From assembly GCF_006345805.1 (NCBI RefSeq), contig NW_021829627.1:1-32040 (forward strand): DNA of 32,040 nucleotides. The letters are read 5' to 3'. Shown here piece by piece: positions 2,553-31,230 of this stretch. The position numbers were made by a program, and so were the translations under genes. The notes under the pieces are model-generated. The model made no database searches. It was not told the DNA's origin and worked only from the letters and a program-made list of their open reading frames with translations. Positions within the stretch are counted from its first letter, which is position 1. Every line of letters starts with the position of its first letter. The stretch comes from Octopus sinensis (taxonomy: Eukaryota).

Positions 2553-3229
2553 TTTTATCAATCTAACACGTTGGTATATTCATAAATATCACTTTAATCG
2601 AGACGTAGAATTATAACTACAACATCAAAGACGGTAGAGCATGAAATTGTAGTATGGTTTTAAGAAATAAGATCAAAGAAAAATTTATTCTCGCAAAATG
2701 GAGTTAGGTGGATTTTTTAAATTTAATTCGTCAAAAAGACTGGAATTTAGGCTAAACATCTGTTTTAGATCACTATAGTTCAAAATACAATAATTCAGTT
2801 TTGTACTATTGGATTAAAACAACTTTTTAATCTGATTTTATAAATTTTTTAGTTCCATCATTATGTTATAAACCATAAAGCCATGTTCTTCATCTTTATT
2901 GGTTTAGCACCCTTACTTATTTAGTTTAATTATTTTTACATTTTGTGCATATAAAATTTTTATTGATTATTCAGTTACTCGTTAAATTCAGTTAATCGCT
3001 AACTTTTGCCTTGGTCAAAAATTTGGCAAGTAAACGGGGTTTGACTTTATTTATATTCTAAAATTTTAAACTCTTCGCAAATGTATGAAAAATAGATTAT
3101 TCCTTACTCAAAATAATAAAACTTTAATGATATGAAATTAAAAATGACAAACATAAAGGGATCAGTTTGTCTATCTAGACAAGAGCTTAGAAATTTTTAT
3201 TATCAAATAAGCCATTAACCTTATCAAGA

Positions 3230-4060
3230 GAGCTTTTGGAAGTCCCCGGAATCTCTTTCATAGTTGAACCTACTGGGATCGATTGGGGAGATGGGAAAAA
3301 ACAGGACTGTATCACTGTGTTTTCTTTCAAGAGAGGAAACACATTTATTGTAAACCGCCCCTAAATAAATCGCCACAATTTCTTAATGCAAAAAGATGCG
3401 GAAGTACTCTTCACTTGTGGAGATCCCGTGAGGCCAATACGATGTCATCCGCATAAGATAGGATGGAATCATTATTGTCGGTAGGGGGCGGAAGATCTTC
3501 CAGGAAAAAGTTGAAAAGGGCCGAGGATAAAGAGGATCCCTGAGGTACTCTGTTGGACAGGAAATGATACGTAGACTTTAGGCCTCCAAGTCACACCCTT
3601 TCCCTTCTTCCACTTAAGAGGTGAGATCCATAGTTTGAGTTACTCTGAAAATATCTTTTTTGATAGAATCCTCCTTGAGACAAAGTCAAAGACTTTGTTT
3701 ATACCGACAGAACAAAGGAAACTTTTTAAGTGTTTCGGTTTGCTTGCAAATCCAGTAAGAATGAAATCAGTGAATGTTTTTAAGCATGTAGACGCGGACT
3801 TGATTTTAAACCTATATTGAAAAGACCTTTACGGTAAAAATTCTTTTATACTTCCAAGAACCATAAACCGGTATAAAAAATGCAAAGTCGTTTCTTTATA
3901 AATGGCTGTGTCCATAATGACGTATCACATTTGGGTTTATCGAAGTATCCAACACCTCTCACCGAAAAAAGAAAAGGTGCTGACCGTTTCTTCTGTTTGA
4001 GGGTAGCGTGTTGGATTTTTTCTCCTCATTATGTGATATTTTTGCATAGAACTTTATCAG
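3230..4060 (-). mobile_element. Degenerate LINE reverse transcriptase fragment (I/Jockey-like)
   Basis: Minus strand reads QYRFKIKSASTCL...INKVFDFV...RVPQGSSLSSALFNFFLEDLPPP...ILSYADDIVL (YADD at about 3441-3456). Stops and frameshifts are present. Confidence 0.85.
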
Positions 4061-4329: not shown

Positions 4330-5096
4330 AAATAACCAGTCAATTTCAAATTTTTCTTATATCCTTTCCAAGTTGAAATCTAAACTCATAATATTTTTGG
4401 AGTGTCTCAAAAATGTGTTTTGCGCTACATTTTCCAACTTATCCATCATTTCATACGTTTCTAATATTGTTGTTTTGTCCTCTGTCCCAATTCCATTATA
4501 AAATTCGCGACTGTTGACTAGATTTTGGTTTTCTTCAAATATTACTTCAGTTATTATTTCTTCCAGGACTTCTTCTCCGCAATTTTTTCTTCTCTACTTT
4601 CTTCAATTTTCTTCCAACAATTAATTATTGTTGTTTCTTTGACTTCCATCCATGTTTTTCTAATAAGTACCATAATCTGTGGCATATCTATATTTTTAAA
4701 AGATTTAGGATTAATTGTTGTATCTTCTTTCAAATTGAACATAAATTCAGTTGGGAAGTTTGTGTAATACACTTTAAAACATTTTATTATACCCATGTCT
4801 AGAAGTTGAATCGAAGATGTTGTGTTTTTCGGAAGAAAAAACAATTTAACATTTGAGTATTCCAATAAAGAATGGCATGTAGCATTATCCATCATTAAAA
4901 GTATTTTTCTATCTTGTGAGAGAAACTTGTTGACTTCATCTATTTGAACTAATCTTGAAATGACTGATCCTGTATTAATAAAAGAAGAAATGTTTTTTTT
5001 TATTCGGCAAATAGTGCCTTTGCTTATCTTGAATTTTTTTACAACTTCTCTTTCAGATGAAGTTTGTAGACACTTTGCAATTTTAATTTGTTTCAA
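4330..5096 (-). mobile_element. pogo/Tigger (Tc1/mariner, CENP-B-like) transposase remnant with an internal deletion
   Basis: The HTH segment EREVVKKFKISKGTICRIKKN is joined directly to the DDE_1 segment RKILLMMDNATCH...FFLPKNTTSSIQLLDMGIIKCFKVYY. The HTH-Tc5 domain and first catalytic region are missing. No TIR pair was found. Confidence 0.85.
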
Positions 5097-5151
5097 TAGA
5101 AATCTTGGAATGCATTACACAAAGATAAGTATCAAGTGTTCAAAAATAATA

Positions 5152-6697
5152 TGTCGCGACCCACGCTGGCGACCATCCCACGCTGGCGACCATCAGTTTG
5201 ACAGGTCATGACCTTCAGTTTGACAGGTGATTTAAACCGGAAAAAATTCATTTTAAGAAATGGTTTAGCGTCATTTTACAAAAAAAATATGGTTTCTCTC
5301 AAAAGATGTTAGCATGAAAAAAGCGACTCAATTTATCATTATTAATGATCGGTATATTTGCGACTCCTAACTCATAGTCTTTATCTAAAGGACGAGAATA
5401 ACCAAAAACACAATTTGGTCATTTGTCTGGACAATGAAATGGAGATGAGGACACTAGCATTCGCCATTCACCAAGAATCCCACTGGGGAATACGAAAGCT
5501 TCAGAAAAAGTGCAGTGAATTCTATTTCACTGTAAAACGTCCAATCATCGAACAAATTATAAAAGACTGTGAAATTTGTAAATTTGCCCTACCATTGAAA
5601 GTATTTAAAAAAAATATACCTAGGTGTCGGATTCTAATTACCATGTAACTGCAGGAAAACCCAACGAAAGATTCCAGGCGGGTCTTATTGATGTTAGAAG
5701 ATATCAAGAGTTTAACGATGGATCTAATTGGATACTGACAATTATTGACATCTACAGCAAATTTGTTGTCTGCAAATCTTTAAAAAATAAAACTGCTACT
5801 GGTAAGACTTGAAATTTAATTGAAGAAGTGGTGAATAAATTCCAAAAATTGTTTTATCAAATTGGATATTGTCAGATCTTGCAAACGGACAACAGGTTGG
5901 AATTCAAAAACCAACTTATGGCTCAACTATGCGAGGAATAAATTTGAAATAAATTAGGGTGTAATTGAGCGCTTTAACTAAATATTGACACGTGCTATGG
6001 CAAAACTTATGGATAAAGAAGGAACTAAAAATTGGAAACAATACGGCGGACATATTACGAACAAATTTCGACCTCTTTAAAAATCAAATTATACAACATG
6101 CTACTGAAACCGGTCTTATTGTACAATTTCTCTACATAAAAAAATACGTAAAAATTGGAAACAATTTTTAGACAAAGTAACTTTTTCCTATAATACGACA
6201 CACCACTCGGCGATCAATTAGACCCCCTTCAAAAGTTTAGGGGTATTTCTGGAATTAACACTGTGATTCATGAAATACCAGGTTATAATCTTATTTATAA
6301 TTTAGATGAAAATAACGAGGTATCGTTTGTCGAAGATGAACTTAATGGTAAATTTACGATGTATTTATTTTTAGAAACGAATAATAAAAGATTGTGGGAC
6401 GAATCCGTCATTAAAGCTACACAGATTTGAATCCCCATATGAAGAAAAGGGAAAAGTAAAAAATATAATGTCTAAACACAGATTAATGGTTAGTTGTTTT
6501 TCCTAACAAAATTTAGTTCGAATTACGAAATAGTTACTATGAATAGAGATAAAAAATGTTAAGTTTTTTTGATTTTTTAGCAATTATCTTTAGTCAGTAA
6601 TTAGTGTCAAACTATGTAGGTCGCCCTGTCAATCTTGTCAACAATGAAGGTCGCTCTGGTCGCCAGCGTGGGATGGTCGCCAGCGTGGGTCGCGACA
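5152..6697 (+). mobile_element. Ginger-like DNA transposon 1 (retroviral-type integrase, TIRs), degenerate
   Basis: 41-bp TIR TGTCGCGACCCACGCTGGCGACCATCCCACGCTGGCGACCA starts at 5152 and its reverse complement ends at 6697. 5-bp TSD TAATA on both sides. Integrase motifs: H2C2 (IHQESHWG...CEIC), PNERFQAGLID, ILTIIDIYSKF, LQTDNR, GVIERFN, YNTTHHSAI. Stops and a deletion are present. Confidence 0.88.
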
Positions 6698-7966
6698 TAA
6701 TATTATTCAGAAAAGAAAAAAAAATAGTAAAGTGCCCATAGTGGGGTTTTGATAATTTTCAAATTTTGATGAAAAATGTACTGAAAATAAAACCGTCCAA
6801 AAAGCGAAAAAGCGAAAGAGCCCCAAGGTTTTTGTTGCGGCAGGGTTCGATTGTATTTATAATAAATGACTTCCCGTTTTTAAAAAAATCAACCAGCATT
6901 AATGTCAAAGTTTAAAATTATTATTGGTTTAGATAAATTCGAAATATTTCGTTATACCTATCTATACAATAAAACGAATTTGTACATCTCGTAATATAAG
7001 TAGGGATTAATTTAGGCTGTCGACTATTTTTTGGGTTAATATAAATTAATACATCGGAAATGATTGACTAGTTATTAATTTGAATAAAATCCGCATTTAG
7101 GCTGTCAATATGTGTAATGAATATAAAAATACGAACTTTACAAAAAAGTGACATAAGATTTAAATAGCATTCTCCCGATCGATTTGGGCCAAAATCAGAA
7201 TGTTTAACTAAATTATATACAATCATATAAAGTGAAACTCAAATAATAAATTGATTGAATGGAATAATAAATATTGTGTAAATCATTCTGGAAATATGTT
7301 TGTTTAATTCTAACTATAGCAGACAATTGTTTATTTCTTCAGAAATCAGTATGATATTGATTAATATTTTAATTATTAATTTCTACAATTACTATCTTGA
7401 TTTACACAACCGTCAGAATCTGTTTTAAAAATAATAAAATATTAAAGAAATTTGTTATTCAAACAATTTAATTTTATATTTGATTGTCTATTAGATCAAT
7501 TCTGTAAAGTTTTAAGCAGATTATTAATGTTTAAAGAGTGTAATTATAGATTGTCTATTAAATTATAACTTATATTTTTTTACAGTCGTATATAGATCGT
7601 GAATCAATGCATAATATTATTGCATTTCATCAAAATTGGTAAAATAATTAAAATAGAGAAATATCTTATGATAATTTTGGTTCCAGCTTCCTCCTCTTTG
7701 TTTTCAATCCGCTTCTTCTTGCAAGATTCATGGGCCGGGATACAGCGTCCAATTAATGAATAAAACATACTTTAAAACAAAATTATTTTATAATCGATAA
7801 TTCTGTGTGATAATTTTTGAGGGGTCTAGTAATTATTATTTACCAAGAATATTTAATATTGTAATTATAATATCGTATTTAAGCTAGCAAATCATTTCCT
7901 GATCGTTATTATCAATATATTTATTTCATATAACAATATAAACCAGCGCCGAAAATTAAGTCGAGA

Positions 7967-9202
7967 ATGAATATAATTCGTTCAAACTTATTATTAAAAT
8001 ATTAATTTTATAGACGCCAAAAACAATGAATATGTTGAAATGGAAACTTCAAGCGACACCTGGATAGAAAATTTTGTTCCAGGGGTATTAATTACTTATG
8101 ACTCTCTTAAATTTAAATAGAATAACCAGTTTTATCAAGAATATCAGAATTATAAGATCCGAATGAAGTCTATTGATGGACCATTATCATATTATGGAAA
8201 TCAACATGGACGAATTTTTGATGAGCGTTCTACGGCATGATTATTTCATATGTAATTTAATAGTTTGATGAAATGAATAAAAATCAATATTTTGATGAAC
8301 CTTTTGGAGAATATTATCATGACATGAATAACCAAAATTTTTATAATTCTTACAAAGTAGTGATTATTTGATTAGCTTAAATTTCAATAGAATAACCAAA
8401 ATGATTTTGATCCCAATTTCGATCAACCTCTTGATTTGGAATATGCTCAGATGAATAAATCAAGAAGAAATATTCATTCAAGAGTCCTTAATTATATTAA
8501 TTTTAATAGAATAATCAAATTAATTTAGATACCAATTTAGATTCATTCTATGGATTAGAATTTGTTCAGAAGAATGAACCAAGGCGAGATATATTTTCCA
8601 CAGTTTTTAATTATATTAATTTAAATAGAATAATCAAGTTAATTTGAATCCCAATTCAGATCAACTTCATTATTTTGAATTTTGTCAGATGATTAAATCA
8701 TTTCCAACTATTCATTCAAGAGTCCTTAATTATATTAATTAAAATAGAATAAACAAATCAATGCGAATAGAAGTATTACTCTGCCAATGTTGAGTTCTCC
8801 TCCCAATGTAAAAATTATTTTGAATTTATTTAATTTGAATAGCAACATCAAAATCATTTAAATGATCAAAGTTTTGAATACAATTCAGAATTCACTGATG
8901 AACCAATTTTGGATAAAGTTTGTAGGTTTTAATCATTTTTAAGAGAGTTGAGCATTCTTTAAATGAACGAATCCGCAGGGATCAAGTCAAAAAAATATAT
9001 TTAAACATCGGCAAAATAGTATATGCACAGAAAGTTGGAAAACAAGTAAAATTACTAAACTAATTTGCAGGACTATCGCGACCATATTCGCCAAACAGCA
9101 AAAAAAGCTTTCTTTTTCCTTGACGAAATTTCAAATATTATCGCTGAGTATGAAGAAAGATTTTATGAATATATCCAAATGATGAAAGACTTTGGTCAGT
9201 AA
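7967..9202 (+). CDS. Putative divergent bHLH(-Zip) transcription factor with an Asn/Gln-rich repetitive N-terminus
   Basis: Removing phase-0 introns of 25-36 nt (one GC-AG) gives a continuous frame from about 8014 to TAA at 9200-9202. The C-terminus RVEHSLNERIRRDQVKKIYLNIGKIV...RDHIRQTAKKAFFFLDEI resembles the Myc/Max-type basic helix HN..ER.RRD.IK..F..L...V. The start codon is uncertain. Confidence 0.6.
8391..8747 (+). repeat. Three tandem 119-bp exon+intron units (93-nt exon + 26-nt intron)
   Basis: Exons 8391-8483, 8510-8602 and 8629-8721 each encode 31 aa starting NNQ. The introns are nearly identical (gtccttaattatattaatt...aatag). Confidence 0.85.
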
Positions 9203-9666
9203 ATATTTCAACTATCTTGATAGCACATCCTCTCGTGGTCGAAAGCGTAATACAAATTCGGAGTGAATTTGCTAGGAGGATAATGAGTTGCAGGACAATA
9301 TTGCCTAATTTTTTTGATTGCTGGTTAGACGAAAATCGTGAAGTTAAAAACTTGATTATAACATACAGACAATAACCTAATTTTAAATTGAAAAAAATAT
9401 TGACTATCAGCCTTTTTTTATTAGCAAAGGTTTCCAAATGGTGAGGCGCGAAAAGCATATCAGAAACATTTTTTTAGAAAATTAGATCTATATAAAAATC
9501 GTGATTCATGTGATTGCCAAAAGACCAAATGAACGATTCCCAGAAGACATCGACACGAATTCCAAGACTTTAACTTTGATACGAAATTTTTCAAAGCTCA
9601 TGAGTGAAGATTCAGCCACAAACTTGATCGGTACTTTTCTATTTCATGAATCACGAAAATAGGCAC

Positions 9667-10101
9667 TTTATTTATTTATTTATTTATTAAACACCAAGAC
9701 CACAGTTAAGACCGAACTAATTAGCATGTGATCCCGACGCACTTCGACGGAGATCCTCCGGAAGGTTCAATCCTATGCAAAGTGCATCGTCCTGCGACGA
9801 CGATGTCCCAGGGGTAGGAGAGCTATTGGTCCTTTTTCGGTGAGCATTAGGTGCCCCCTCGGCGTTTCCAAATCCAGTCGAAATCTCCAAGTGAATTTGG
9901 TGGACCACGTAACGCCTTTCTAAGGCCGGATAGGAAGGAGATCCCTTTTTGACATACTGTGTCGTGCCAGATGTACTCGTCACCTCACGGGCAAAGGAAC
10001 TTCGACGAGATTAACCCCGACTCCAAAGTAGCCTCTTCTGGATTCGAACCCACGACGGCTGAATTCCAGTATCCAGGGCATACTCTTCAGCCAAGAGGGC
10101 C
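9667..10101 (-). mobile_element. tRNA-derived SINE
   Basis: tRNA-like head at 10101-10030 with an A-box-like TGGCTGAAGAG and a perfect B box GGTTCGAATCC (10040-10050), but non-canonical anticodon and T arms. A GC-rich body of about 330 bp follows, then an (AATA)n tail at about 9667-9690. Confidence 0.8.
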
Positions 10102-10227
10102 AAATTAATTAATGAAAATTTATTTAAATATTAGAGGAAAAACTAAAAAAATGAACTATGCCGATTTTGTAAATATTATTATAGATTTTTTTAAATAAAA
10201 TTTTGAATTTTTTAATCGGTTGTGTGG

Positions 10228-11316
10228 ATGGACGGTCACGTTGGGATGAGAAAATACGCAAAATTGAAGGACTTCGAACTCCCTCGCTCTGAGATGGAGT
10301 CCGTAGCCTTCCTTCAGGAGGTTGGAATCATTCCAACCGAAAAGAAATGCGCCAAAAGACATCCGATGATCTTAGAGCGAGATGGTACAACTTGGGTGTG
10401 CGATAAAAGCGAGTGTCGAATTTCAAGTTCTGTCCGAAACGGTGTAATAAGAGAGTACTTTATTTTTAGGTACGTGGCTCGAAGGCACGACAGTGTCCTT
10501 AGAATCTTGTATTCGTTTTATTTATATGTGGAGCTTCGACAGACACACCATTTTATGGTGTAGGCGTCAACTGGAATGGAGTGGCCAAACGATATGTAAT
10601 TGGTCTCACTCGCTGCGGGAAGTATGTGCTGCATATTTAGCAAATTGTCCGAACAAACTGATTGTTATATTACATTATTAGATTGCATAGGTGGAATTGA
10701 AAATGTCGTAGAAGTTGACGAAAGTATGTTTTCGAAAAGAAAAAATAATGCGGGACGGATTCTCCCTCAACAATGGGTGTTTGGGGGAATCTGTCGTGGA
10801 ACAAAAGACTGTTTCCTGGAGATGGTACCAGATCGCTCCAAAAGAACGTTAACCGCAGCGATACAGCGAAATATCGCACCGGGTTCAGTGATACACTCTG
10901 ACAAATGGAAGGGTAATTGTAATTACTTTATTCTTGTTAATAGGTTATTCAACCCCAGATCTAACTGCTCTTGGATATGTGCATCTTACAGTAAATCACA
11001 AGTTTATTATAATTCATTTATAAATTTGCAGACGAAATTTTGTAGACCCGGAGACCGGTGCACATACCCAGACTGTTGAGAGGTTCGTGTAGCAAAAATT
11101 ATATACAAAAATATAGAATGTGGAGGAACGCAAAATGGCGCAATAAGAGACAAAGAGGAACCGCACGCCACTATATGGGTGAATACTTTGCAGGTATTAA
11201 ATATTCAGATTTAATTTGTAGAATTTTTATGGAGAAGGCAAGTGAGCCATTTGGACAACGCATTCGACGAATTTTTAGACGCAATCGTGCAATGTGCCTA
11301 TTTTCGTGATTCATGA
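10228..11316 (+). CDS. Merlin/ISXO2-like DDE transposase, 7 exons, about 300 aa, open after splicing
   Basis: Predicted GT-AG introns at 10442-10469, 10647-10681, 10913-10943, 11002-11031, 11083-11116 and 11194-11221. The spliced frame reads ...RNGTWLEG...VVEVDESMF...QQWVFGGI...IHSDKWKGY...[30 protein letters not shown]...YFAEFLWR...RDS*. All three catalytic residues (D, D, E) are present. Confidence 0.88.
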
Positions 11317-12599
11317 AATAGAAAAGAACCACTGGATCTAACACAACTATTCATTCTTTAATTAACCAAACACCATTTGAAAAACTAAGAGGAGTTTCTG
11401 GCATAAACACAGTCATTCATGAATATAAAAGTTTTTCAATTTTTTTAAATTTTAAGGAAAGTGGGGGTTTGGATGATTTCTATCCACCATTTGAATGTAG
11501 AAAATATTTCAGATGTTTTATGTAAATTTTGTATAAAGTATGCTCAAAAACATAGATGATACTGATTTTGTATTAAATTTTTTTCCACAGAATTTAAATT
11601 TATCGTATTTTAAACGGATGAATAAAAAGATGAATGTTCATCAATCGAAATACAATTTTTCAAAAAAAAATTTTTTCAATTGGAAATGAAGTATGTTTAG
11701 TGAATAATTGATAGGTTCGCTTTTAAAAGATTATGTGACAAATCCTTCACCGTAGCTAAACAGATTTGAATCTCCATATGGAGAAACAGCTGAAATTAAT
11801 CAAATTTTGTCATACAATCAACTACTGATTTATTTTATATTCTAAAAAAACATAGACGCTTAATTCTAATAAATTTTTTATTGTTGAAACGGTTATTGAT
11901 TAGAATCCAATGCAATTAATTTTTACAGTCACTAGACAGGCATTATAATAGATTGATAGGTGATATGTAGCCACCATGGAATAATACGGGCATTATTATA
12001 GATTGAAGCGACATAATACAGTGTAGCATTTAGCCCATCATAAAGAGGCAGTTTTGTTTGATTTGCGACTAAATCAGTTTTTATAATTACACGATTTTTC
12101 CAATTATTGGATCTTAGTCATATTTCCACTTTCGTTTTTGATCATTTTGTCCGCCGCTACGGTGGAGTTATAATCAAAGAGAATTTCTTAATAATGTCAA
12201 ATAGCGCCCAAATTGGTTTTGTGACCATACTTATTGAAGAAATCCATCTTTTAGTAGATTTTTATAATTTGTAATTTTGTATTTTTCAAAAGAGGGTTTT
12301 CATTTAGACCCAGGTGCTTTAAAACAATAATTTTTTATTAGAAAATATAATTCAGCGGCATTGATTAATCATACAAATACATGATTATTATTGAAACCTA
12401 TATATTTTATTCACATGTGAAAAACAGTTTTTATTTTTTTGGCCGATAAGAGGGCGAACCTAATAAAATAATAATCATATTGGGAAGATTAAAAATATGT
12501 ATTTCACTCATTTTTAATAATTATGATTGATCAAGTAAAAAATCAAGTAAATATTTATGCAGAATCTACATTTGATTTTTAACTAAAGTCGCCTTTGCA

Positions 12600-14359: not shown

Positions 14360-16406
14360 ATGGATGATAGTAACTACATTCAGAAATATGAGCGCATTTT
14401 ATCAGAGCGACGTGCAAGATTAAGATATTTGGCAGACAAAATACAGTTATTCGACAGCGAAATGAACATCCCAAAGTGAATAACTCAATACATTTGTAGA
14501 CAACCATCTGTTGTTCCCCAAACACCACAAAACAAAGAAAACGTCCCCAGCCCCAGAAAAGAGACCAAACAAACTCACAATCCTTTCAAATTCGTCACTC
14601 CAATCCCCCCAAAACCCACCGAACAGCTGTTTCAGCCCCCTTTGGGTACTAATTTCCCCAATACATAGCAGATGTCCAACATGCTACCCCAGAGAGGCAA
14701 GAACGTGGCCCAATTAAAGGTCACGTAGCTGAAATAGTGCGACAAATCGAGTTACTTGGAGATAAATACCACCAAACGGAAGTCAGACCCCCACAATCAA
14801 ATGTCACCCGTCAAGACTCCCCTCAAACTGTATATCCAGACCAATATTGTAGTCTGATGAAGACACAGAAAGCCCATCGGTTGACTTGTCATCCCAGCCA
14901 GTGAAAGACTCTCCTCAAACTGTAAATCCAGCCAAATATTGTAGTCTGATGAAGACACAGAGAGCCAATCGGTTGACTTGTCATCCCAACCAGTGAAAGA
15001 CTCGCCTAATATTGTAAATTTATACGAATATTGTAGTCTGATGAAGAAATGGAGGGCAAATGGGTAGACATGTGTAGAGAGAAGTGTAATTGTGACTTGT
15101 CTGCATTGAAGGATTCATATGTGGAGGTGTCATCGACAGTGCGGGATATAGTGATGTGTGCTGATGGAGTGAAATATCAGTCGATATACCCATCGTCATC
15201 CCAACTAGTGAAAGGTGAGTGTTGTGATGTATTCAGACATGCTGGAACACTCCCAAGTGATGAAGGTGGTCCACAACACAGTCCATTCTGAAAAGGACTT
15301 GACAGAGGGACACCTCCGGGCATCCTTGGAAATAGAGGAGGGAGTGATAAACCAAGTGATCAAGGCATTGGGGACATGTGGAAGGCACCACACCCCGTCC
15401 ATCCACGCCGAGTGTTCTCGTCTGCTGTTGGTGGCCAGTATATGTCAGATTGATGATTGCCAGTACATCGAAAGGGGGCAATTCTCACACATTTGGAGAG
15501 GAGGATTCTCAGGTCGAATCCCTTTTGCTTTATTATTAAACTGAATGACATTCGACTGCAATTGAAGCAGCCCCTGTCCGACAGAACGCACTATTATGTG
15601 TGTTTGCTCAAACATGGCCACACAGTCCTGGCTACCGAGATGAGGTGGTCTGCCGAGTTTGTTGGCCACTCCTCCATCTTCTTTGCCGACGAGTTCACAC
15701 TGTCCAACCTCCCCGTTGACTTCCAACTGGTCTTGGAAGTGTTTGTCCTCGTCCTCCCCCAACAAAAGCACAGTTTGGTGGCCAAAATGACTCCCCTGTT
15801 GAGTAGTGTGCTTGTGTGTATGGTAGAGAGGAGGAGTAATCGCTTTGTGCCTAAATCCTTCGCGTCGTTGGGGTCCGTCAGTTTGTCCGTGGAGGAGAAT
15901 GGACGGAGGATTATACAACTTCCGCGTCTTCCCTCCACCTGTTTGTTGAATGGATTGATTGGACTTAACTTTGACTGTTCGATAATATCGTCCAAAGTAC
16001 TCAGATGTTTCCTCGTTGTGTTGTGCCGTGATTTATAGACCTTCCGCGAGTCCAACTCGAGTTGGGATCGACGTTGGTGTTTCATGTGTGAGGCAGTTCT
16101 CAAGATGTGGCATTACCCCGAGGATGAGCGTTCTGGCAAGGTTGTGTGTGTTGTCCATTCTAGATTCCAATTCGAAGGATTGACTTTCTCAACAGTCTGG
16201 ATGGCCTCCCTCTCCTATTTCGGGGATGGTTTGTCCACGGCCTTTCACATTCGAGGTTCGGTTGAGGGAGAGTCGTCGTGAGGTTGGTGTGGCCAGGTGA
16301 TTGTAGGTCGTGTTTGGTCTCTACTGACTCCATGGATGTGATGATGGATATGCTCGAGTTGTTGAATAACCTTTGGGAGCAATTGTTCTTTGAGGCGCTG
16401 ACTTAA
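14360..16406 (+). CDS. ANLN: Anillin-like protein (RhoA-binding/anillin homology domain + PH domain)
   Basis: About 11 introns of 22-26 nt (for example 14476-14499, 14646-14668, 14830-14852). Motifs: NQVIKALGTC...AECSRLLLVA, LNDIRLQLK...YYVCLLKHGHTVLATEM...LPVDFQLVLEVF, and PH CFL/TFRE..SWDRRWCF...LKMWHYPEDE...CPRPFTFEV. One or two apparent single-base frameshifts at about 16205-16310 (possibly sequencing errors) make the 3' end less certain. Confidence 0.88.
14810..15050 (+). repeat. Tandem 92-bp exon+intron units in anillin (69-nt exon + 23-nt intron)
   Basis: Exons 14853-14921 (SDEDTESPSVDLSSQPVKDSPQT) and 14945-15013 (SDEDTESQSVDLSSQPVKDSPNI). Three related introns (gta.at...aatattgtag) lie at 14830, 14922 and 15014. 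Confidence 0.85.
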
Positions 16407-18335
16407 CTAAAGTGTGGTTATTTCATCGTTGTTTTATATTTGCAGACTAAGTTAGGAGTTTTAATGATACAGCCAGTTGTCTTACAGAGGTAGGATTTCA
16501 ACAACCACCCCCTGTGGGTGGCAAATTGTACTTTAGCAGGCTAGTTTTTCTACTAAATGCATTCATTTAATGTTTTGTCGCATTAAGGTGGACTGAGATG
16601 ACACTTATTATAAACAAAAGGTGTCCATATCAGGATATTAATTACAATTTGGGATTGACGATCGAAAGGTCATTTCTCAGTAAGTCGAACTTAGTGCTTA
16701 ACATATGTTATTGACGATTTTTGAGTGTTTTTGTGCATTGGGCCATCAACGTATTATGGAAAACAATCCATGATTTGTTTATCGCCTAGTCAGATTTAAT
16801 CGTGATTAGCCATGCCGCAAGATTTAAACAACATGTTGACATCTCGCTATTCGGCCACACTTTTTTTATAAGATCAAGACAGAAAGAGAACATGTTATCA
16901 AGAAACTAACTAATTCAAATGAATGTGTCTCTGCTTCATCTTGTCCCCTTTTTTTGTAGTGTGGCCGATGAAGACATCCGGTTACGCAGTGAGATCACTG
17001 ATGAGGGCGTCAATTCGGGTTCCACATTAGATGCATGGATGGAGCCTTCCTTTAGCCGAAGTGATAACAGTGGAATTCCAATAAGTACTCCACCACCCGG
17101 AATGAATCAGATTGGTCAAAATAAATCTCAAACTACGATTACCGGTTAATTAAACAGTATATAAAACAAATATTCCGGCGATGCTAATCCTCCTAATGGT
17201 TGGCAGTGTAAACACTAACTTGTATAGAATACCTCTACTCACTTTACTCGCCACTTTCATTCACTCTGAGAGAATAAAACTATACAAGACAATAAAGAAG
17301 AGATTCCTGTTGGCACTGTCGTATACAACTTCTGCAAGGGACTGTGTGCAATGCAGATACTACACAGATATTAAGTATTCAAAGATGTATTTCTCGGCTA
17401 ATTATTTGGAGAATAATGGTTTAAATGAATATAACTTAATTAAATTAGGTGGTTGATCGAATAGACTACTACGACGGACCTCGTTCTGGATTTAAATATG
17501 GTGTTATATTCTTAGAAATCACACTTCTAAAAGATTACAAAGCATACACAGTCGAAATATATATAACAGTAAGAACTGGTGAACTAAAGTGATAGGTCCT
17601 GGACATAAATGACAACCCCCCATATTCCCAAGAAATACACGACTCATAACACTGGGAGGATTATCAACTGGGTTAATTATCCACTTCCCGAGAGCTGTGG
17701 ATAAAGACTCGGGGGTGAATGCACAGACACGGTATGAAGTGCTGGGGGATAGTCGTTCTCCCTCACAAATAACAAATCATCCCCCACTCTTGTATGCCAC
17801 TCCTCCCTCACTCCCCGCTCCCCCCATTAACCTGCGAGTCTTTGCCTTTGACCAACTCGACATACACTACTGGTCATTCATGGACATTGCCATCATATTC
17901 AGATCCGCCTACAACACTCCCATTCAGTTCTACGACGTCATCCTCAAAAAAGTCCCGGGAAAAGGAAAACATTTGATCACAATCCAACCCACGGACGAGG
18001 AGATCGCAAAATACGGAATGCCAACGTATTCAAATACAACCATCCACGGAAAATTTTTTATTTCATATGACGGAGAGATTAAACACTCCGGAACATATAC
18101 AGAGTTGGATGATGTATTTGATGTGGATGTGAAATACACCAACAACAGAGTGGGAGTGTATACAATCCAAGTGAAGACGATTGAAGAGAAGGCCACATTG
18201 AAATGGGTGAATGCTGGAGTTTTCTGTGTTATATGCAGTGTTCCCTCTAATGCTGCGCGCGTGCGCGTGCGCGCAGCAGTTTTGCACCTTGCTCGCAGCG
18301 AACTTTTTTTTCTGCGCAGTAGAAGTATAATATTA

Positions 18336-19537
18336 TGTGACATGGGCTGCGCGATACCTATGGGCCGCGTGATAACCTGACGTGAACCTTGAAATGTGCA
18401 TTATGAATTGATGGGATTAAATTATAAATCTTTAATTAGACCGCGACTCATTCTTATCATTTAATAATTTACTAAATTAGCTAAAGACTCTCTCATTTTG
18501 ACAAAAAAATTATATTTGTAGGAATTTAATTATCAGAATTAATTTTTGGTGGAAAACCTAAATTTCTTGAGTTATTTCTAGCGTGCAATTATTTTGCAGC
18601 AATGTTTTCGTACAAGTTATGTAAAGAATAATTTGGAATATCAATTTTAAAAGATGCGTTACAGGATAAATTTCCTGAACATCTTACAAAGCAAAAAAAT
18701 ATAGACTAGTTAAGAAATTGAAAATTTTACTGTATTAATGAAAGGCATCATACAAATTGTAATGTATAGATTGTATCTTAAATGTCCGAATTCAGATCAC
18801 AAGCTAGTGATTTGTCTAGACAATGAACCCGAAATGGAGATCGTTGCTAAAAGTTTGCATGACTTCTCGCATGGAGGAGTTAACAAATTTGAATATGAAT
18901 GTCGACAACGATTTCACAGTTAAAAATGAGATTATTCGAAAAGTCATTCGAAACTGTGAATTTGTAAATTTGCGCGACCCTTAAAAGTTTTAACTTTTTT
19001 AACTCCTAGATTGGAGATATAAATAACCATGTCTTCGCATCTTGCCCAAATGACAGATTTCAGTAACAATTTATATAGATTTGCATTTGCGAGCCGCTCT
19101 ACACACTAAGTCCTCAAATGAAGTTTGTGAAACCTCAGATCATTATTTTTTCTTAAATGGGACGTGTCAATTTCTTCAGTCCGATAATGGACTGAATTCA
19201 AGATCGTGAATGACCAATCTATGTGAGGAATTCAATATCGAATTCACGGAAGGCCAAACAATCCCCGCTCACAAGGATTGTCGAACGCTTCAATCAACCA
19301 TCATTACAAGAAAAATGGCAAAAATGATCGACAATGATACAAAAAGTGGCTGGAAAAATTAGAAATGCAGATAAAAAATTCGATGAGCGAATTTTGATTG
19401 TGCCAATGTCCAGACTTAAAAAATAATTACAAGTTATTATTCTTTGAAGTTTAATATTAATTACAGATTGCATTAAGTTAAGCTCAAGGTCACGTCAGGT
19501 ATCACGCGGCCATAGGTGTCACGCAAACCATGTCACA
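18336..19537 (+). mobile_element. Ginger-like DNA transposon 2, degenerate, inserted in the hAT 5' region
   Basis: Imperfect TIRs of about 55 bp (TGTGACATGG...GCCGCGTGATA(A)CCTGACGTGA(A)CCTTGA). 5-bp TSD TATTA on both sides. Integrase remnants LYLKCPNSDHKLVICLDNEPEM...LHDFSHGG...CRQRF, LQSDNG and SQGL.ERFNQ are homologous to element 1. Confidence 0.85.
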
Positions 19538-19599
19538 TATTAAAATTGCTATTTTTTTAATTTTTATATGAATTTATATATTCTTATTTTCATTTCAAA

Positions 19600-21590
19600 A
19601 CGAAAACGTGTCTATAATATTGATATGAGACTTAAGAAAATTCTCTCTTCTTTTAAGCCAGAATGGTTGATAGAGTACGTCGAAACCTTAACACCCGATT
19701 CAAAAATTCCCCAACATTGCAACTGGGTGATATTTTTAGTTTTTCCGAAGACTGCGGAGTTTTTGTAAAATATGTGGCGACGCTAAAGCGACTTGTGATT
19801 TTGCGAGTGGAAAAACCTGGGATATATGGAAATTGGATTATCTGAAGAGACATATTACCCATAAAATTCATTCAGATTCAATAATAAAATTAAGAAGAAT
19901 TCGAGCAGGAACTGGAATCAGCTGCTTGCTCACAGAGTCTAAGGATGACCGACAGATGAGATTCAAAATGAGTGATCGTGCACGAAGTAAAATTGAAAAA
20001 GTGAAAATTCTCATTGACAATGTTATTTTGGCTCTCTCCATGAATGCTTCATTACTTTCTGTTATGAATATACATGATCATATGGCAAAATATGTAGAAC
20101 TTCCTGATAGCTGGCGAAGTAAAAATTTGCATTTGAGTTTGTTGAATGCATCGACTACGTGGTCAAAGAGATATGTATGCAGGAAATTAGAGAGTCTCGG
20201 TTCCATACACTCATTGTGGACGAAAGCACAGATATATCCGTAACCAAAATGCTTATTATATATATTAAATATCGTCCTACGGGGACAAATTATCACAAAA
20301 CAGTTTTTGCTAGCATAATGAAACTTACAAGTTGTGACAGTAAATCTATTTTCATTGCAATCAAGAAATTCTACATGACAAACAATCTTGATTTTCAAAA
20401 GATGGTAATGTTTACATCAGATGGGGCATCCGTTATGCTAGGGAGAAGAAATGGCGTGGCATCACTGATCCGTGCTGAGGTTCCTCATCTTACTGAACAA
20501 CATTGCGTCGTTCACAGACAAGATCTAGGGATCGATGATGCATGGAAAAAAATAATCTTGTGAAAAATATTGAAATATTACTCCGGACTGTTTATACTGT
20601 TTTCAGTCGATCAAGTATAAAAAAAAGCTGCATTTCAGGACCTGCTAATGTTGTTGTTGAAGATGTCGTTTCATTTAAGCCACTAAATGAAGTGAGATGG
20701 ATGTCTCGGCATTTTGCTGTTAAAGCTTTGATAAACTACACAATTTTAATTGAATATTTCAAGAAACAGGTTGAAGATGATAATGATCCGATTGCAAAAT
20801 ATTGCTTAAAACAACTTCAAAATCCTCTTATTCATGTTGCTTTAACTGTCTTAAATGAAATTTTGGCTGAATTAGCAGATTTGTGCACAGTTTTCCAAAG
20901 AAGCTGTATATCGACCATAGAAGCAGTACAGTTTGCCAGAGCAAAAATTTCGAAGCTGAAATCTCAATATTTGGATGGAAATGAAATTTACTGGAGTGAC
21001 AGTGTGAAGATGTTGTTATCAACAACTGGTTATGGAGATACAAATACAGATGAAATCCTATGCTTTATCGAGCATGTTTATCTGCATTTACAAGAAAGAT
21101 TTCCAGCTGACGAATTAAGAGAATGGGTAGCATTTGACACTCAAGCAATTCAAAATCAGACAAACTTTGAATTTGGAAAAGAGGAGATAATTAAATTAGC
21201 GAAAAAATATGAAAATTTACTCTCTTCAGAAGTCCCACTCATAAAACTGCAGTCGGAATATACAGATCTCAAGTTTATTTTAAAAGAAAAACTGCACTCT
21301 GGTGCTTTGAAAACATTTGAAGATGTAATTTACTATATACTAGCGGAGAAAAAATTTCAGCCACTGCAACATTTGTGGATATTTGTGGCACATTTCAAGC
21401 GTCGAGTGCTGATGCTGAACGTGGATTTAGTTTGATGAACTGTATCAAAACTAAACTACGTAATAGACTTGAGATTGACCATTTGGAGATGATCATGCGA
21501 ATCAAATTCTATTTAACAAGTGGGAATACAGTGGATCTTGATCGAGTATACAAATTTTGGATACAAAATAAAACAGAAGAGAATATCCAA
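19600..21590 (+). pseudogene. hAT transposase (ZNF862-like), frameshifted
   Basis: Fragments CKICGDAK...WKLDYLKRH, TLIVDESTDISVTKMLIIY, MFTSDGASVMLGRRNGVA, QHCVVHRQDL, NEVRWMSRH and ASSADAERGFSLMNCIKTKLRNRL (hAT dimerisation domain) are spread over different frames. Confidence 0.9.
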
Positions 21591-22253
21591 TTGACTAGAC
21601 CTATTTTTTTAACCATTGGTTTTTTAATTGTAAAATTTTCCCCCCCAAAAATTTTTTGCACACGTCACTTTATAACGCTGCACAATGCAATGTGCCCAGC
21701 GCGCATAGCTACCACCACTCGCTTAGAGGGAACACTGGTTATAGTTGACAAGAAGACAGATTAATAGACCGATTGAGTGTGAGTGAAGTAGTTCAGAAGG
21801 GAGTAGAATGTGGATGCAGTACTAATTCGGAGACTGTTTGTTTTCAGTTGTTTCTTCGACCGATCTGATTCTCCTTGATTATTCGAGTGTCATCCCCACA
21901 ATTAGTGTCAACGTAAGTTGTGTGTGTTTGGAGGACATGATTTGTTTTCGATTCTGGGATGCAAACCAAAAGAATATACAATTACTGTACAGGTTGGGAT
22001 ATATTATTTATCATCACATATTTTCATTTTGCATGCTTCTTAAATTTATGATAGATTATACCTAAAGATTACATCCACACCACAATTATTGAAAACTAGC
22101 TCGGCAGCTCGCTTCGCTCACCGCGACCTAGCTCCTGCGGGGGCTGTTTCATCAACAACTATAAGTTTATGTAGATGTATAAAATAAATTCTAGCTTTAC
22201 GAAAAAACTTAACTAAATAGTTAATATTTTACGCAAATTCTTCTGATGGCGCT

Positions 22254-22555
22254 GTCAATTGGTGGTAAATTGTGTTAATGATTGTGCTAATGTGGGTTCA
22301 ACTATCAAAGTGTTTTTCAAAATCTGTTAATTGCATACTCTAATTCAAGGTCGTGCGTCAATTGGTGGTAAATTGTGTAATGATTGTGCTAATGTGGTTT
22401 CAACTATCAAAGGTTTTCAAAATCTGTTAATTGCACACTCTATTCAAGGTCGTGCGTCAATTGGTGGTAAATTGTGTTAATGATTGTGCTAATGTGGTTT
22501 CAACTATCAAAGTGTTTTTCAAAATCTGTTAATCACACTCTATTCAAAGTCGTGC
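22254..22555 (+). repeat. Tandem repeat, about 100-102 bp x 3
   Basis: Units start GTCAATTGGTGGTAAATTGTG at 22254, 22356 and 22456. Confidence 0.95.
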
Positions 22556-22626
22556 AATCTGTAATTGCACATTCTGTCAAAGTCAAATATGATAATAGCT
22601 TTAATTTGATTCATGTCGATAATGAA

Positions 22627-23620
22627 TAAAATTTTTTTAATTTTTTTGGGGGAAGGTTTTAAGGACCACATCAATGAAGTCGAGGACATCGTAGTTGTTC
22701 ATTTTAACCAAAATGAGAAAAATTTTTTTTTAATTTTTTTGGGGGAAGGTTTTAAGGACCACATCATGTAAGTCGAGGACATCGTAGTTGTTCATTTTTA
22801 ACCAAAATGCAGAAAATTTTTTTAATTTTTTTGGGGGGAGGTTTTAAGGACCACATCATGTAAGTCGAGGACCGTAGTTGTTCATTTTAACAAATGCAGA
22901 AAATTTTTTTTAATTTTTTTGGGGGGAAGGTTTTAAGGACCTCATCATGTAAGTCGAGGACATCGTAGTTGTTCCATTTTAACCAAAATGCAGAAAATTT
23001 TTTTTAATTTTTTTGGGGGAAGGTTTTAAGGACCTCATCATGTAAGTCGAGGACATCGTAGTTGTTCATTTTAACAAAATGCAGAAATGTTTTTTTAATT
23101 TTTTTGGGGGAAGTTTTAAGGACCTCATCATGTAAGTCGAGGACATCGTAGTTGTTCATTTTAACCAAAACGCAGAAAAATTTTTTTTTAATTTTTTTTT
23201 GGGGGAAGGTTTTGAGGACCTCATCATGTAAGTCGAGGACATCGTAGTTGTTCATTTTAAACCAAAATGCAGAAAATTTTTTTAATTTTTTTTTGGGGGA
23301 AGGTTTTAAGGACCTCTCATGTAAGTCGAGGACATTGTAGTTGTTCATTTTAACCAAAACGCAGAAAATTTTTTTTAATTTTTTTTGGGGGGGAAGGTTT
23401 TAAGGACCTCATCATGTAAGTCGAGGACATCGTAGTTGTTCATTTTAACCAAAACGCAGAAAAATTTTTTTTAATTTTTTTGGGGGGAGGTTTTAAGTAC
23501 TCATCATGTAAGTCGAGGACATTGTAGTTGTTCATTTTAACCAAAACGCAGGAAAATTTTTTTAATTTTTTTTTGGGGGGAAGGTTTTAAGGACCTCATC
23601 ATGTAAGTCGAGGACATCGT
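22627..23620 (+). repeat. Tandem repeat (minisatellite), about 92-93 bp x 11
   Basis: Unit AAAATTTTTTTAATTTTTTGGGGGAAGGTTTTAAGGACCTCATCATGTAAGTCGAGGACATCGTAGTTGTTCATTTTAACCAAAATGCAG. Copies differ mainly in homopolymer length. Confidence 0.97.
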
Positions 23621-23648
23621 ATTGCCAATTTGAAGTTGGTGGTGACAC

Positions 23649-23707: not shown

Positions 23708-24899
23708 CATACCATTTTATTATTAAGATATATGAGAATATGCCCCTATGCCCCTGTTTATATGGAAATAGTGAAGATAAAAATATATAGAAATCCAAAT
23801 TTTGATGATCGATTATTTAATAAAAGTTTAATCACATCAAAGAGGGTATTTGACCGCGAAATCGAAAAGGTTTGATGTTGACCTTTACTTTCCCAATAAT
23901 ACCAAATCAATAAAACGATTGAAATTATGGACTTGAATGACAATTCTCCAGTGTTTACTAACAAGACATGTTCCCTCATTACATTGATAAATACTCGTGA
24001 ACGATACTAACAAATTTATTTGCTGAGGATGCTGACCTGGAATGAATGGAAGAATCAATATGAAGTCATTTCGGTAATGAGTATAATGAAGAGATTGGAG
24101 TCTGTGATCCATACACAAACTACGAGGATGCATTTTATATTGATCCGAATTCGGGACAGTTAGACCTAAATCATGACTTTAAAAATGTGGGATATTTCTT
24201 ATTAATATACAAGCTACTGACTCAGGGCCCCAAAAATTATTCGCCAATATTCACTGTTTTGTTCACGTGGTTGAATTTTCATCTATTTTTGACTATTCAT
24301 TCAACGGGAGTAGTGCAGTGCAGAATCAGACTATTAAATTGTCACAAAATCAATTTGGACAAACTTTTCTGAGGAATACAGCTACTTTGTGGAGTTATTT
24401 CTTTGACGATTTTATATTTACAATTCCCGATGATTCCTCACGGTATTTCAACGTTGACCTTTATTCCGGAAATGTCAGTTACGTTGGCAAAATTCAACCG
24501 TCTCTGACAAACAACTATACTCTGACGATAACTGCTTTTTCACGAAAGCATTCTTACCTCAACTATACTTTCAGCGTCAATTTGGTATTCAATGATTATT
24601 CGAGTCTCCACAAATCAGTGGACGGGAAATATATTGCGATTATTATTCCTTTTGTTATACTTTTGATTAGCTTGCTCTATTTTGGCGTTATTCATAAGGA
24701 AAAATGTAAAATATACGGCCATACATGAAACTGACAAGACTTAAGATACTAACAATGACCTTTAATCATTTTATTTCAATTATGGACTTTTCTTGTTTTA
24801 ATCACAATGTTTTACAAATAATTTATGTTAATTGCATGAAAATAGCAGAGAAAGTATGAATCATTTGTTACAATGAATAAAATAATTTTATTGTGTTTA

Positions 24900-29439: not shown

Positions 29440-31230
29440 GTGTGGTCCGTGGGCAGCTTGGAACGCAAGAATCTGATATTCCCCTCCAAATTCGGTGTCG
29501 CAACCGGATTGTCCTGCTAATCTGTTAACTCTACGGGCTATCATCGATCAAGTAACGCAGGTGGACATGATCAAATGGCGAATGAAGTGGTTAACGTTTC
29601 TCGAGCAAGATTCAAAAGAATACCACGTGGTGGATGGCCTATGTTTACTCAGGCTTTTAACGAAAAGTTCCTCACGTCCAAATCTGTGGCGAATGTGAAG
29701 AGTCTGGCTAAGATGACGGGAACAAAGTCTAACTCTCCAATGGATCAAGAAAAAGAATCACAAGACTGAAATCTCTAATTTAGAGATTGCTCATTGAATT
29801 TTCTTCCCAAATAGGGCAAGTAAAATCTATCTCTAGAAAAAACGAAAGCCGACCAAAAAGTCCCATACTTAAAAAAGAAATATTGTCTGGAATAAATGCA
29901 GTGATTAATGAATATATAAAGACCAACCTCCTGTCAATTTGAATGATATCACCGATATCGTTTATGCTGCACAGCTGACATACCAAGCTCTCACAAAATA
30001 CTCTCCTAAGAATAACAACTGGAAAGGAATAATGGAAGCAAAACTAATTAAACTTAAAGAACAATACGAACAGACTAATACACTTATTGATCAAAAAGGA
30101 AGTTTGATAATGCAACGAGGGATACGCTGAGTGAATGTGGATATCGAAAGGAAGAAAGGAGAACTTGGAAGAATTTTGCTTGCATTGGAGACGAAATAAA
30201 GATTGTTGAGAAGAAACTTCGACTCCATGATGCAAGAAAAGAATTTCGGAAACAGAATTGGTTTTTTGAATTGAATCGGCGTTGTTTCTATCGCAGTTTA
30301 AATGATGAGAGAAAGAGTGCAGAGTTCATGTTTAATAACAGTGAATGTTTTTCATATTGGAAAAAATATGGAGTAGAAATGAGAAGAGCGATAATGTGTT
30401 ACATATTAACAAGAGAGTGACATGGGCAGAGGATACATTTGCAGAGTTTAGTAAAGAAAGCATCCTTGAAACAATTAAACAACTCCCAAACTGAAGAGCT
30501 AGCGGTTGTGATGGGGTGTATAATTTCTTTCTAAAAAATGACCTCAATCCATGATCACTTGTGTGAAGAACTAGTCAAGATAATCCATGGTGAATACATA
30601 CCGGATGAGTGGTTCTACACTGGAATCACATATCTCATCCCAAAGAAAGATATTTGTCAGGACCCAAAGATTTGAGACCAATTACTTGTATGTCTAACCT
30701 ATATAAGCTTGCAACGAAATGTGATAACAGGAAGTTGGGAGATTATATTGAGGCATATAATCTGATTGCCGATAATCAATTGGGAACTCGGCGAATGTGT
30801 CAAGGGGCAAGGGAACAAGCAATTCTTAACCGGTGCATTCACAAGCAAAACGGAAATAATTTGTTTTCTACCTGGATTGACGTAAAGAAAGCGTTCGATT
30901 CGGTAGATCACGAATTTCTGTTCCAGGTGCTTGAAAACTCCGGACTCCCTACCTGGATTGTGAATTTTGTGAAGAACCTTGTAACGAAGTGGAGAATAAA
31001 GCTACAAGTGTAATTCTGAATCATAATGAAATCGGAGAGGTTTAATTGGAAAGAGGCATACTCCAGGGTGATTCCTTGTCACCTCAAATCTTTGCCCTGG
31101 TGATGGATCCTCTTAGTAGAATTCTGAATGCTAAGTACCCAAAAGTGATGATTGATAACCAAGATCAGGGTTGTATTACATATACAACAAATCACTTACT
31201 GTTTATGGATGATCTAAAGGGATCTCGACG
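29440..31230 (+). mobile_element. Non-LTR retrotransposon, R4/Dong-like clade, 3'-truncated and degenerate
   Basis: NDITDIVYAAQ, NWFFELNRRCFYRSL, ASGCDGVYNFFLKK, WFYTGITYLIPK, RPITCMSNLYK, NQLG...GAREQAILN, WIDVKKAFDSVDH, RGILQGDSLSP and HLLFMDDLK. The sequence ends right after the catalytic motif, with no endonuclease domain. Confidence 0.88.

Follow-up and report, generated by a model that had tools for sequence, protein, structure and literature searches.

A nearly intact Merlin transposon whose transposase gene is predicted to carry six ultra-short introns

Background

DNA transposons of the Merlin superfamily, whose founding paper is reportedly that of Feschotte (2004), are related to the bacterial elements IS1016 and IS1595. 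Introns in transposase genes are familiar from the P element and from the Ac/hAT elements, where the output of transposase depends on splicing by the host; however, these elements belong to other superfamilies, and their introns are fewer and much longer than those considered in this work. Here we describe a Merlin copy at positions 9630-11330 of a 32,040-nt stretch of DNA (contig NW_021829627.1 of the Octopus sinensis assembly GCF_006345805.1, positions 1 to 32,040 of the forward strand; the whole stretch is hereafter called the window), in which the transposase gene can be read as a single frame after the removal of six GT-AG segments of about 30 nt. At this locus we see no sign of regulated or tissue-specific splicing. 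The locus had been pointed out in an earlier note, made from the letters of the window, as a hidden intact transposase split by miniature introns. The observation itself is confirmed by our analysis, and the interpretation that accompanied it, taken as a whole, is partly supported.

According to the 2021 survey of the superfamily, the terminal inverted repeats (TIRs) of Merlin elements begin with 5'-GG, and the elements are said to lack the Zn_Tnp_IS1595 zinc-finger domain; introns are not mentioned in that survey (PMC8101967). On the side of the host, ultra-short introns in animals have been reported only in the myxobolid myxozoans and in Dicyema japonicum, and animal introns shorter than 30 nt are documented only in a paper of 2026, which gives 22 bp as the median intron length of both Thelohanellus kitauei and Myxobolus rasmusseni and 27 bp as that of Henneguya salminicola, together with a 5' splice signal reduced to approximately GTa (PMC13644364). 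In T. kitauei, introns mostly of 20-25 bp coexist with hAT and Tigger elements and with 179-185 Merlin-type proteins (PMC4986447, PMC8101967), and the same mixture of Merlin, hAT and Tigger elements in a short-intron host is found in the window. The introns of our Merlin copy resemble those of the myxobolids and Dicyema in their GT...AG boundaries, in a length below ~35 nt and in a weak splice-site consensus. They differ in that the published work concerns host genes (PMC13644364), and in being slightly longer and more A+T-rich than the introns that we sampled from the host. No T. kitauei protein occurs among the named matches listed in our two protein searches, which argues against a close relationship of this Merlin family to the Merlin-type proteins annotated in T. 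kitauei; the window probably stems from a species other than T. kitauei.

Reconstruction of the transposase gene

As the earlier note had remarked, a mechanical list of open reading frames (ORFs) presents the locus as a set of fragments (10222-10563, 10493-10681, 10600-11079 and 11058-11309). Excision of six GT-AG segments downstream of the ATG at 10228 leaves seven exons with 300 codons, which terminate at a TGA (11314-11316) inside the right TIR. The segments that had been proposed as introns were reproduced exactly (28, 35, 31, 30, 34 and 28 nt), and the claim that their removal yields an ORF of about 300 amino acids, free of stops and with a complete D-D-E triad, is borne out by our rebuilding of the gene from the sequence. 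Two models are distinguished below for the second intron: model A, which is that of the earlier note, and model B, which is the one supported by homology. The parts of the gene are as follows.

10228-10441 (+): exon 1, with the ATG and the N-terminal region; aligned without gaps to relatives
10442-10469 (+): intron 1, 28 nt, GTGTAA...TTTTAG, phase 1; the join SSVRN/GTWLEG is gap-free against the profile of relatives
10470-10646 (+): exon 2 as in model A; in the homology-supported model it ends at 10663 and adds CPNKLI
10647-10681 (+): intron 2, model A, 35 nt, GTCCGA...TTATTAG, phase 1; the sole canonical in-frame solution
10664-10690 (+): intron 2, model B, 27 nt, GTTATA...GCATAG; fits the family alignment, 1 nt out of frame
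10682-10912 (+): exon 3, with D143 (10717-10719) and D204 (10900-10902); VEVDES and HSDKW stand in conserved columns
10913-10943 (+): intron 3, 31 nt, GTAATT...TAATAG, phase 1
10944-11001 (+): exon 4
11002-11031 (+): intron 4, 30 nt, GTTTAT...TTGCAG, phase 2; the sole in-frame GT-AG option there
11032-11082 (+): exon 5, with E243 (11078-11080); TQTVERMW is aligned with a conserved block
11083-11116 (+): intron 5, 34 nt, GTTCGT...ATATAG, phase 2
11117-11193 (+): exon 6
11194-11221 (+): intron 6, 28 nt, GTATTA...TTGTAG, phase 1
11222-11316 (+): exon 7; the TGA stop (11314-11316) falls within the right TIR

GT...AG boundaries are present in all six introns, with a pyrimidine at position +3 in introns 4 and 5, and the A+T content is 78% in the introns versus 55.5% in the exons. 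Each junction was examined by scoring every in-frame GT-AG alternative located at most 25 nt from each boundary against a profile of 108 relatives, and at 6/6 junctions the pair originally proposed obtained the top score. Five of the six (VRN/GTWLEG, KWK/GYS, VNH/KRNF, TVE/RMW and YFA/EFLW) fall within ungapped, high-confidence alignment (15 relatives aligned, profile of 108). At these five junctions the restored reading frame is collinear, without gaps, with that of the intronless homologues; at junction 2 the in-frame choice shortens a linker of conserved length, and the collinear choice is shifted by 1 nt out of frame. The predicted introns behave as spliceosomal ones.

The earlier note had suggested comparing the spliced protein with PF12762 (DDE_Tnp_IS1595), and the match is clear, with an E value of 2.5e-19 and 70.2 bits, where the cut-off is 27; it extends over positions 8-152 of the 153 in the profile and over query residues 142-275. 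A protein database search returned 381 matches, the best with an E value of 9.7e-94 and ~50% identity over 92-96% of the query. Among the 120 matches listed, 108 have a length of 280-310 amino acids; the top matches that were aligned are single uninterrupted ORFs, and the alignment with intronless Merlin transposases of 290-303 amino acids runs from end to end. The putative catalytic residues D143 (VEVDES), D204 (HSDKW) and E243 (TVERMW) occupy invariant or nearly invariant columns, with 60 residues between the two aspartates, within the range of ~50-70 known between the first two blocks of Merlin transposases, and 38 residues between D204 and E243. Conservation in the 108 relatives reaches 90% or more in 74 columns, and the spliced product keeps 72 of these. 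The N-terminal region contains the motif C41-x3-H45-x12-C58-x4-C63 (encoded at 10348-10416), which is conserved across this Merlin clade, C58 and C63 being invariant among the relatives and C41 and H45 conserved in at least 90% of them. This CHCC motif has no match in Pfam, and it presumably binds DNA. A sequence search for a solved structure of a relative found none. With its GG-starting TIRs, 8-bp target-site duplication (TSD), PF12762 domain and DDE triad, the segment 9630-11330 is, by its sequence, a copy of a Merlin (IS1595/IS1016-related) DNA transposon, in agreement with the assignment made earlier.

The second junction

The 17 nt (10647-10663) that are removed in model A encode, in the frame of exon 2, the peptide CPNKLI, which aligns with RPNQKI, RPKQKI and RPHHKI of the three best matches. 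If exon 2 is continued through to 10663 and the segment 10664-10690 is taken as the intron, the frame-restored reading becomes LANCPNKLI-GGIENVVEVDES, which is gap-free against the family and includes LANCPNKLIGG. The spacing between the R of the L-R-E-V-C motif and the I-G-G motif is 14, 15 or 16 residues in 126/126 relatives that possess both motifs; it is 15 in the frame-restored model B and 12 in model A, the linker of the latter being 2-3 residues shorter than in all 126. The frame-restored model B also obtains the higher profile score (384.2 bits versus 378.4 bits for model A), and a variant with a 44-nt intron 2 was rejected with a lower score of 367.5 bits. However, model B as the sequence stands is 1 nt short, and its translation proceeds through ...NKLIVELKMS and terminates after 142 residues, before any part of the catalytic domain is reached.

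We infer that the ancestral gene probably possessed the 27-nt intron 2, and that a short run of G at its donor or acceptor side later became shorter by one G, or else that this base is absent from the assembly. The 35-nt intron would then represent a rescue by a cryptic donor rather than the original structure, and it may still be used. With one nucleotide missing at the boundary of the homology-supported intron 2, the production of a full-length protein needs either the upstream cryptic donor or an error of the assembly. The description of the gene as intact goes too far on two counts, namely junction 2 and the 435-nt block that lies upstream of the gene.

Termini, target site and 5' region

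The Merlin element spans 1,701 bp, and its non-coding parts, together with the flanking duplication, are listed here.

9622-9629 (no strand): left copy of the TSD, ACTTGATC; 7/8 identical to 11331-11338
9630-9666 (+): left TIR, GGTACTTTTCTATTTCATGAATCACGAAAATAGGCAC; 36/37 against the right TIR
9667-10101 (-): block resembling a short interspersed nuclear element (SINE), probably a nested insertion, 435 nt, with a tRNA-like head and an (AAAT)5 tail
10102-10227 (+): A+T-rich leader, presumed native 5' region, 17% GC; in length it compares with all that separates TIR and ATG in relatives
11294-11330 (-): right TIR, the reverse complement of which matches the left TIR
11331-11338 (no strand): right copy of the TSD, ACTGGATC

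The TIRs of 37 nt differ by one mismatch, or can alternatively be taken as 40 nt at 95% identity, and both begin with GGTACTTTTC; the two copies of the TSD likewise differ by one mismatch. The earlier claims of TIRs and of an 8-bp TSD therefore stand at 36/37 and 7/8 identity, respectively, and the element conforms to the general description of Merlin on which the note had relied, namely TIRs that start with GG (PMC8101967) and a TSD of 8 or 9 bp. In the whole window, only the two ends of the element contain a 24-nt core of the TIR, and 100 shuffles produced 0 matches. The termini are common to relatives, the first 10 nt of the left TIR being those of the TIR of L007 (GGTACTTTTC) and the first 7 nt those of the TIR of L001 (GGTACTT), two elements from other sources that are described below. 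TIR-like partial matches at 6263-6277, 9499-9526 and 11412-11432 were dismissed as additional copies, their scores being within or just above the range of shuffles. An empty paralogous site, sought by joining both flanks, was not found; the right flank is part of another repeat.

Another region of the window is related to this right flank. A 1.57-kb element with 51-nt inverted repeats (96%) occupies 5142-6707 and adjoins a truncated pogo/Tigger DDE_1 ORF (4554-5096, minus strand); a part of its interior (6228-6447) resembles the right flank of the Merlin copy (11377-11786), and both regions contain a 15-mer similar to positions 11-25 of the Merlin TIR, with a score just above those of shuffles.

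The interval between the left TIR and the ATG is 561 nt here, compared to 53 nt in L001 and 70 nt in L007, and most of it is taken up by the 435-nt block. On the minus strand the tRNA-like head of the block begins at 10101, an exact B box (GGTTCGAATCC) lies at 10040-10050 and corresponds to tRNA positions 52-62, the A box, judged by eye, is only partial, and the (AAAT)5 tail directly adjoins the left TIR on its inner side. The G+C content is 52% in 9693-10101 versus 17% in the 126 nt before the ATG. On the grounds of the B box, the simple-repeat tail, the base composition and the shorter interval of relatives, the block is probably a SINE-like nested insertion, and without it the element would have a length of ~1.27 kb. 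No clear target duplication accompanies the block, no second copy of it was found within the window, and an exact pattern of its head had no match in the metagenome and viral contigs. The block would place seven additional ATGs ahead of the start codon in any transcript that begins in or close to the TIR. The leader, 10102-10227, may have a promoter function.

Introns of the host

A host gene for comparison is available ~3 kb downstream of the Merlin copy, outside the element.

14360-16280 (+): anillin-like host gene, a single ORF when eight GT-AG introns are removed

Spliced from the ATG at 14360, this gene gives one ORF of ~590 amino acids (a coding sequence of 1.77 kb) with the Pfam Anillin domain (E value 1.6e-13). 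Its eight introns, all GT-AG, have lengths of 24, 23, 23, 23, 23, 22, 26 and 21 nt. At 14813-15088 the gene contains three tandem units of 92 nt, each composed of a 69-nt exon (SDEDTES.SVDLSSQPVKDSPQT) and a 23-nt intron; without removal of the 23-nt introns the repeated peptide would lose its frame, and since the three units hold both parts, exon and intron were duplicated together. Comparison by tblastn with anillins from a spider, a sea spider and unnamed sources independently calls for a change of frame at 15438-15463. A word-indexed search with the anillin-like ORF gave no match, and a full HMMER scan gave weak matches to chelicerate anillins only (31-41% identity), which we consider of little value for placing a fast-evolving lineage. 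An exact look-up of a 297-amino-acid ORF of the window retrieved no record. Because the gene reads through only without the eight GT-AG segments, the host evidently splices ultra-short introns, as the earlier note had supposed. With introns of 21-26 nt, the host animal is most likely a myxobolid myxozoan or a dicyemid; a flatworm, considered at first, was discarded in view of these introns.

Relatives of the element and the gain of introns

The plain form of this Merlin clade is L001 (ENA ERZ25067582 ctg11513, positions 2914-3963 of a 481-kb contig), an element of 1,050 bp with one uninterrupted ORF of 290 amino acids, perfect 34-nt TIRs (GGTACTTGTGGG...) and a perfect 8-bp TSD (GCATAACA). Our copy shares with it 49% protein identity, the start of the TIR (GGTACTT), the 8-bp TSD, the CHCC motif and the DDE core; in contrast to our copy, L001 has no introns and only a short TIR-to-ATG interval, and 57 nt separate its stop codon from the TIR. 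Compared to the superfamily in general, the coding sequence of 0.9 kb is here interrupted by six introns, while the closest full-length relatives that we found are uninterrupted ORFs.

Introns in this Merlin clade are not restricted to the element of the window. Among the contigs of short database matches that resembled exon fragments, we found a complete element in ENA metagenome assemblies (L007 and L008; L007 481-1715, with a 63-nt inverted repeat) whose ORF is intact, at 293 amino acids, once its three phase-0 GT-AG introns (45, 39 and 38 nt) are spliced out. Two phase-0 introns of 42 and 46 nt are present in L006 (Logan SRR14454025) and one of 41 nt in L009, and the acceptors in these relatives are TTTTAG or TTTCAG. 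The relatives' introns interrupt H/KIGG, LVM/VPNR and HFK/VNHK, the last being common to L006, L007 and L009. None of these positions coincides with an intron of our copy; two of them come near, one at a distance of 6 nt from our intron 2 and the other, HFK/VNHK, 11 nt upstream of our intron 4. Thus, the intron-bearing relatives belong to the same clade and have GT-AG introns inside the transposase gene, but they have one to three introns of 38-46 nt and the copy in the window has six of 27/28-35 nt. A search with an unspliced ORF of 159 amino acids, in which read-through of an intron would produce a match, returned nothing above 68% identity, and the matches covered the exon only.

The differing intron sizes between the sources fit a gain of introns within the host lineages. 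Since the closest relatives are intronless, and the other intron-bearing relatives differ from our copy in intron positions and have longer, host-typical sizes, it is conceivable that all six introns were gained inside the mobile element after its arrival in a lineage whose introns are the shortest known among animals. We advance this idea tentatively, and in its full form, with all six gained there, it seems to us more doubtful than not. If it is true, this Merlin family would document a recent gain of introns with both its date and its direction, the expression of the transposon would depend wholly on an unusual spliceosome, and the slight excess in length of the Merlin introns might even betray that the element was transferred from a related host in which introns are longer.

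Status of the copy and alternative explanations

The overall explanation that we favour, and consider fairly probable, is that the locus is one Merlin copy with six acquired ultra-short introns, nearly intact and of doubtful autonomy. According to this scheme, the transposase gene would have acquired its six spliceosomal introns in this lineage, and the host spliceosome would have to remove them before the transposase of ~300 amino acids could be made; a host incapable of splicing ultra-short introns would not make the transposase at all. By analogy with the family, the protein, with its presumed metal-binding CHCC motif and an IS1595-type DDE core of the RNase-H-like type, would bind the GG-starting TIRs, and the core would then cut at the GG termini, excise the element and reinsert it with a staggered cut of 8 bp that produces the 8-bp target duplication.

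The near-identity of the TIRs, the TSD matching at 7/8 positions and the well-kept coding sequence speak for a fairly recent insertion, and they indicate a copy that is apparently young and almost undecayed. On the other hand, the 1-nt defect at junction 2 and the nested block suggest that the copy has begun to decay. With an ORF that is open only via the cryptic donor of intron 2, and with a block of 435 nt between the TIR and the ATG, the copy is in our reading close to intact, although its autonomy is doubtful. That it makes a working transposase as it stands has, in our estimate, somewhat less than an even chance, and this estimate pools three routes: an error in the assembly, use of the cryptic donor, and model A being the true ancestral structure. 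Owing to its good TIRs, the copy could be moved by a transposase supplied in trans.

Several observations weigh against the favoured explanation. Both the splicing and the transcription of the Merlin gene are predictions made from sequence only, and the 1-nt defect could be an assembly error. With regard to a multi-copy mobile family, no second Merlin copy was found within the window, exact TIR patterns had no match in the metagenome and viral contigs, and no close family member was found in the protein, metagenome and viral collections. With regard to the nested block, no tRNA or Rfam match was obtained in the block or elsewhere in the window (ARAGORN; Rfam at gathering and lax thresholds), and the fold of the tRNA-like head is no better than that of shuffled sequences (z -1.3). 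Finally, the earlier note had described the Merlin introns as sized like those of the host. This is correct in so far as both are ultra-short; however, every Merlin intron (27/28-35 nt) is longer than each of the eight introns of the anillin-like gene (21-26 nt; Mann-Whitney p 0.002, for a sample from one gene, n=8, in which three introns are tandem duplicates), and the A+T content is 78% in the former and 65% in the latter.

The first alternative is a Merlin copy that is intact throughout, autonomous and perhaps active, in which the 35-nt intron 2 is genuine and the 300-amino-acid product is functional. It has in its favour that model A is the sole canonical in-frame GT-AG solution and obtains the top in-frame score, that the DDE residues and 72/74 conserved columns are retained and the TIRs are almost identical, and that a GTC donor is compatible with a 5' signal of approximately GTa (PMC13644364), introns 4 and 5 also having a pyrimidine at +3. 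Nonetheless, the linker of 12 residues compares poorly with the 14-16 of 126/126 relatives, and the 17 nt that would have to be intronic still encode CPNKLI, similar to RPNQKI of the best matches. Moreover, a competing 27-nt GT-AG pair, nearer to the intron size of the host, overlaps the 35-nt intron and would lead to a truncated product, and the 435-nt block would add its seven ATGs if transcription begins at the TIR. On balance we regard this alternative as improbable.

It is likewise unlikely, in our opinion, that the copy is fully intact with introns of 28, 27, 31, 30, 34 and 28 nt and that the phase problem of intron 2 results from a mistake of assembly or sequencing in the short run of G. 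Small gaps at homopolymers are typical of lightly polished long-read assemblies, and of all readings the frame-restored one agrees best with the family. In another part of the window, two 1-nt gaps, located at short homopolymers within a stretch of ~35 nt, divide the motif of a cadherin-like gene among three frames, and in a hAT remnant the frame shifts where seven A follow one another. However, these defects of the cadherin-like and hAT sequences could equally be real decay, and neither the 1.77-kb coding sequence of the anillin-like gene nor the remaining coding sequence of Merlin needs any correction; since both are clean, the error rate cannot be high.

We consider it very improbable that the locus is a domesticated transposase, i.e. 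a host gene that has gained introns and is no longer a mobile element. The intron density is indeed more typical of host genes, a single copy is seen and the coding sequence is well conserved, but the 37-nt TIRs with family-typical termini and the flanking 8-bp duplication have been retained, the stop codon lies inside the TIR, and transposon remnants are found all around. Least credible of all is the view that the six interruptions are random insertions in a decaying pseudogene and that the open frame is a coincidence of the segments chosen, for although intron 2 does call for special pleading, all six segments have GT...AG boundaries, 27-35 nt and 78% A+T, five of them can be excised without gain or loss of a residue relative to the intronless relatives, the resulting coding sequence is free of stops and keeps 72/74 conserved columns, and a host gene 3 kb away contains GT-AG mini-segments of the same kind.

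Implications

A gene with six introns of ~30 nt and intronless nearest relatives is one in which the gain of introns can be polarised and roughly dated. For studies of how animal introns shorter than 30 nt are recognised and spliced, six different introns in 1.1 kb would offer a compact substrate. Gene calling that relies on ORFs, or is of the prokaryotic style, fragments transposases of this kind, and the Merlin content of myxozoan and dicyemid genomes may therefore be miscounted. Our results do not change the understanding of Merlin transposition itself.

Other features of the window

Cadherin-like coding pieces on the plus strand (23900-24725 and 17613-18377) are recognisable by motifs such as DLNDNSPVF and ATDSGP. 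At ~24020-24090 the peptides AEDAD, GMNGRIN and YEVIS follow one another over three frames, separated by the two 1-nt gaps mentioned above, and the frame changes again at a run of five A near 24180; the piece is either a pseudogene or affected by residual indels of the assembly. It also contains a candidate intron of 20 nt at ~24076-24095. An inverted-repeat pair (33 nt, 85%, 1,146 nt apart) at 18331-19542, directly after the long cadherin-like ORF, may delimit a small non-autonomous DNA transposon.

The hAT-type transposase remnant (19833-21764, plus strand) gives a weak match to DUF4371 and consists of four overlapping ORFs split by frameshifts, one of them at the seven-A run near 20549-20555. 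Mini-introns were ruled out in this remnant, where, unlike in the Merlin copy, the interruptions are plain frameshifts. Tandem satellites are formed by a 93-nt unit repeated 11 times (22537-23621), a unit of ~100 nt repeated three times (22254-22533) and a 119-nt unit repeated three times (8380-8762). A fragment of a reverse transcriptase (RVT_1, E value 3e-13) is located at 30609-31013 on the plus strand, and dispersed repeats of 70-160 nt are common to the regions of ~25.4-27.0 kb and 31.3-32.0 kb (25461-26583 and 31337-32040), one pair of 90 nt being 98% identical.

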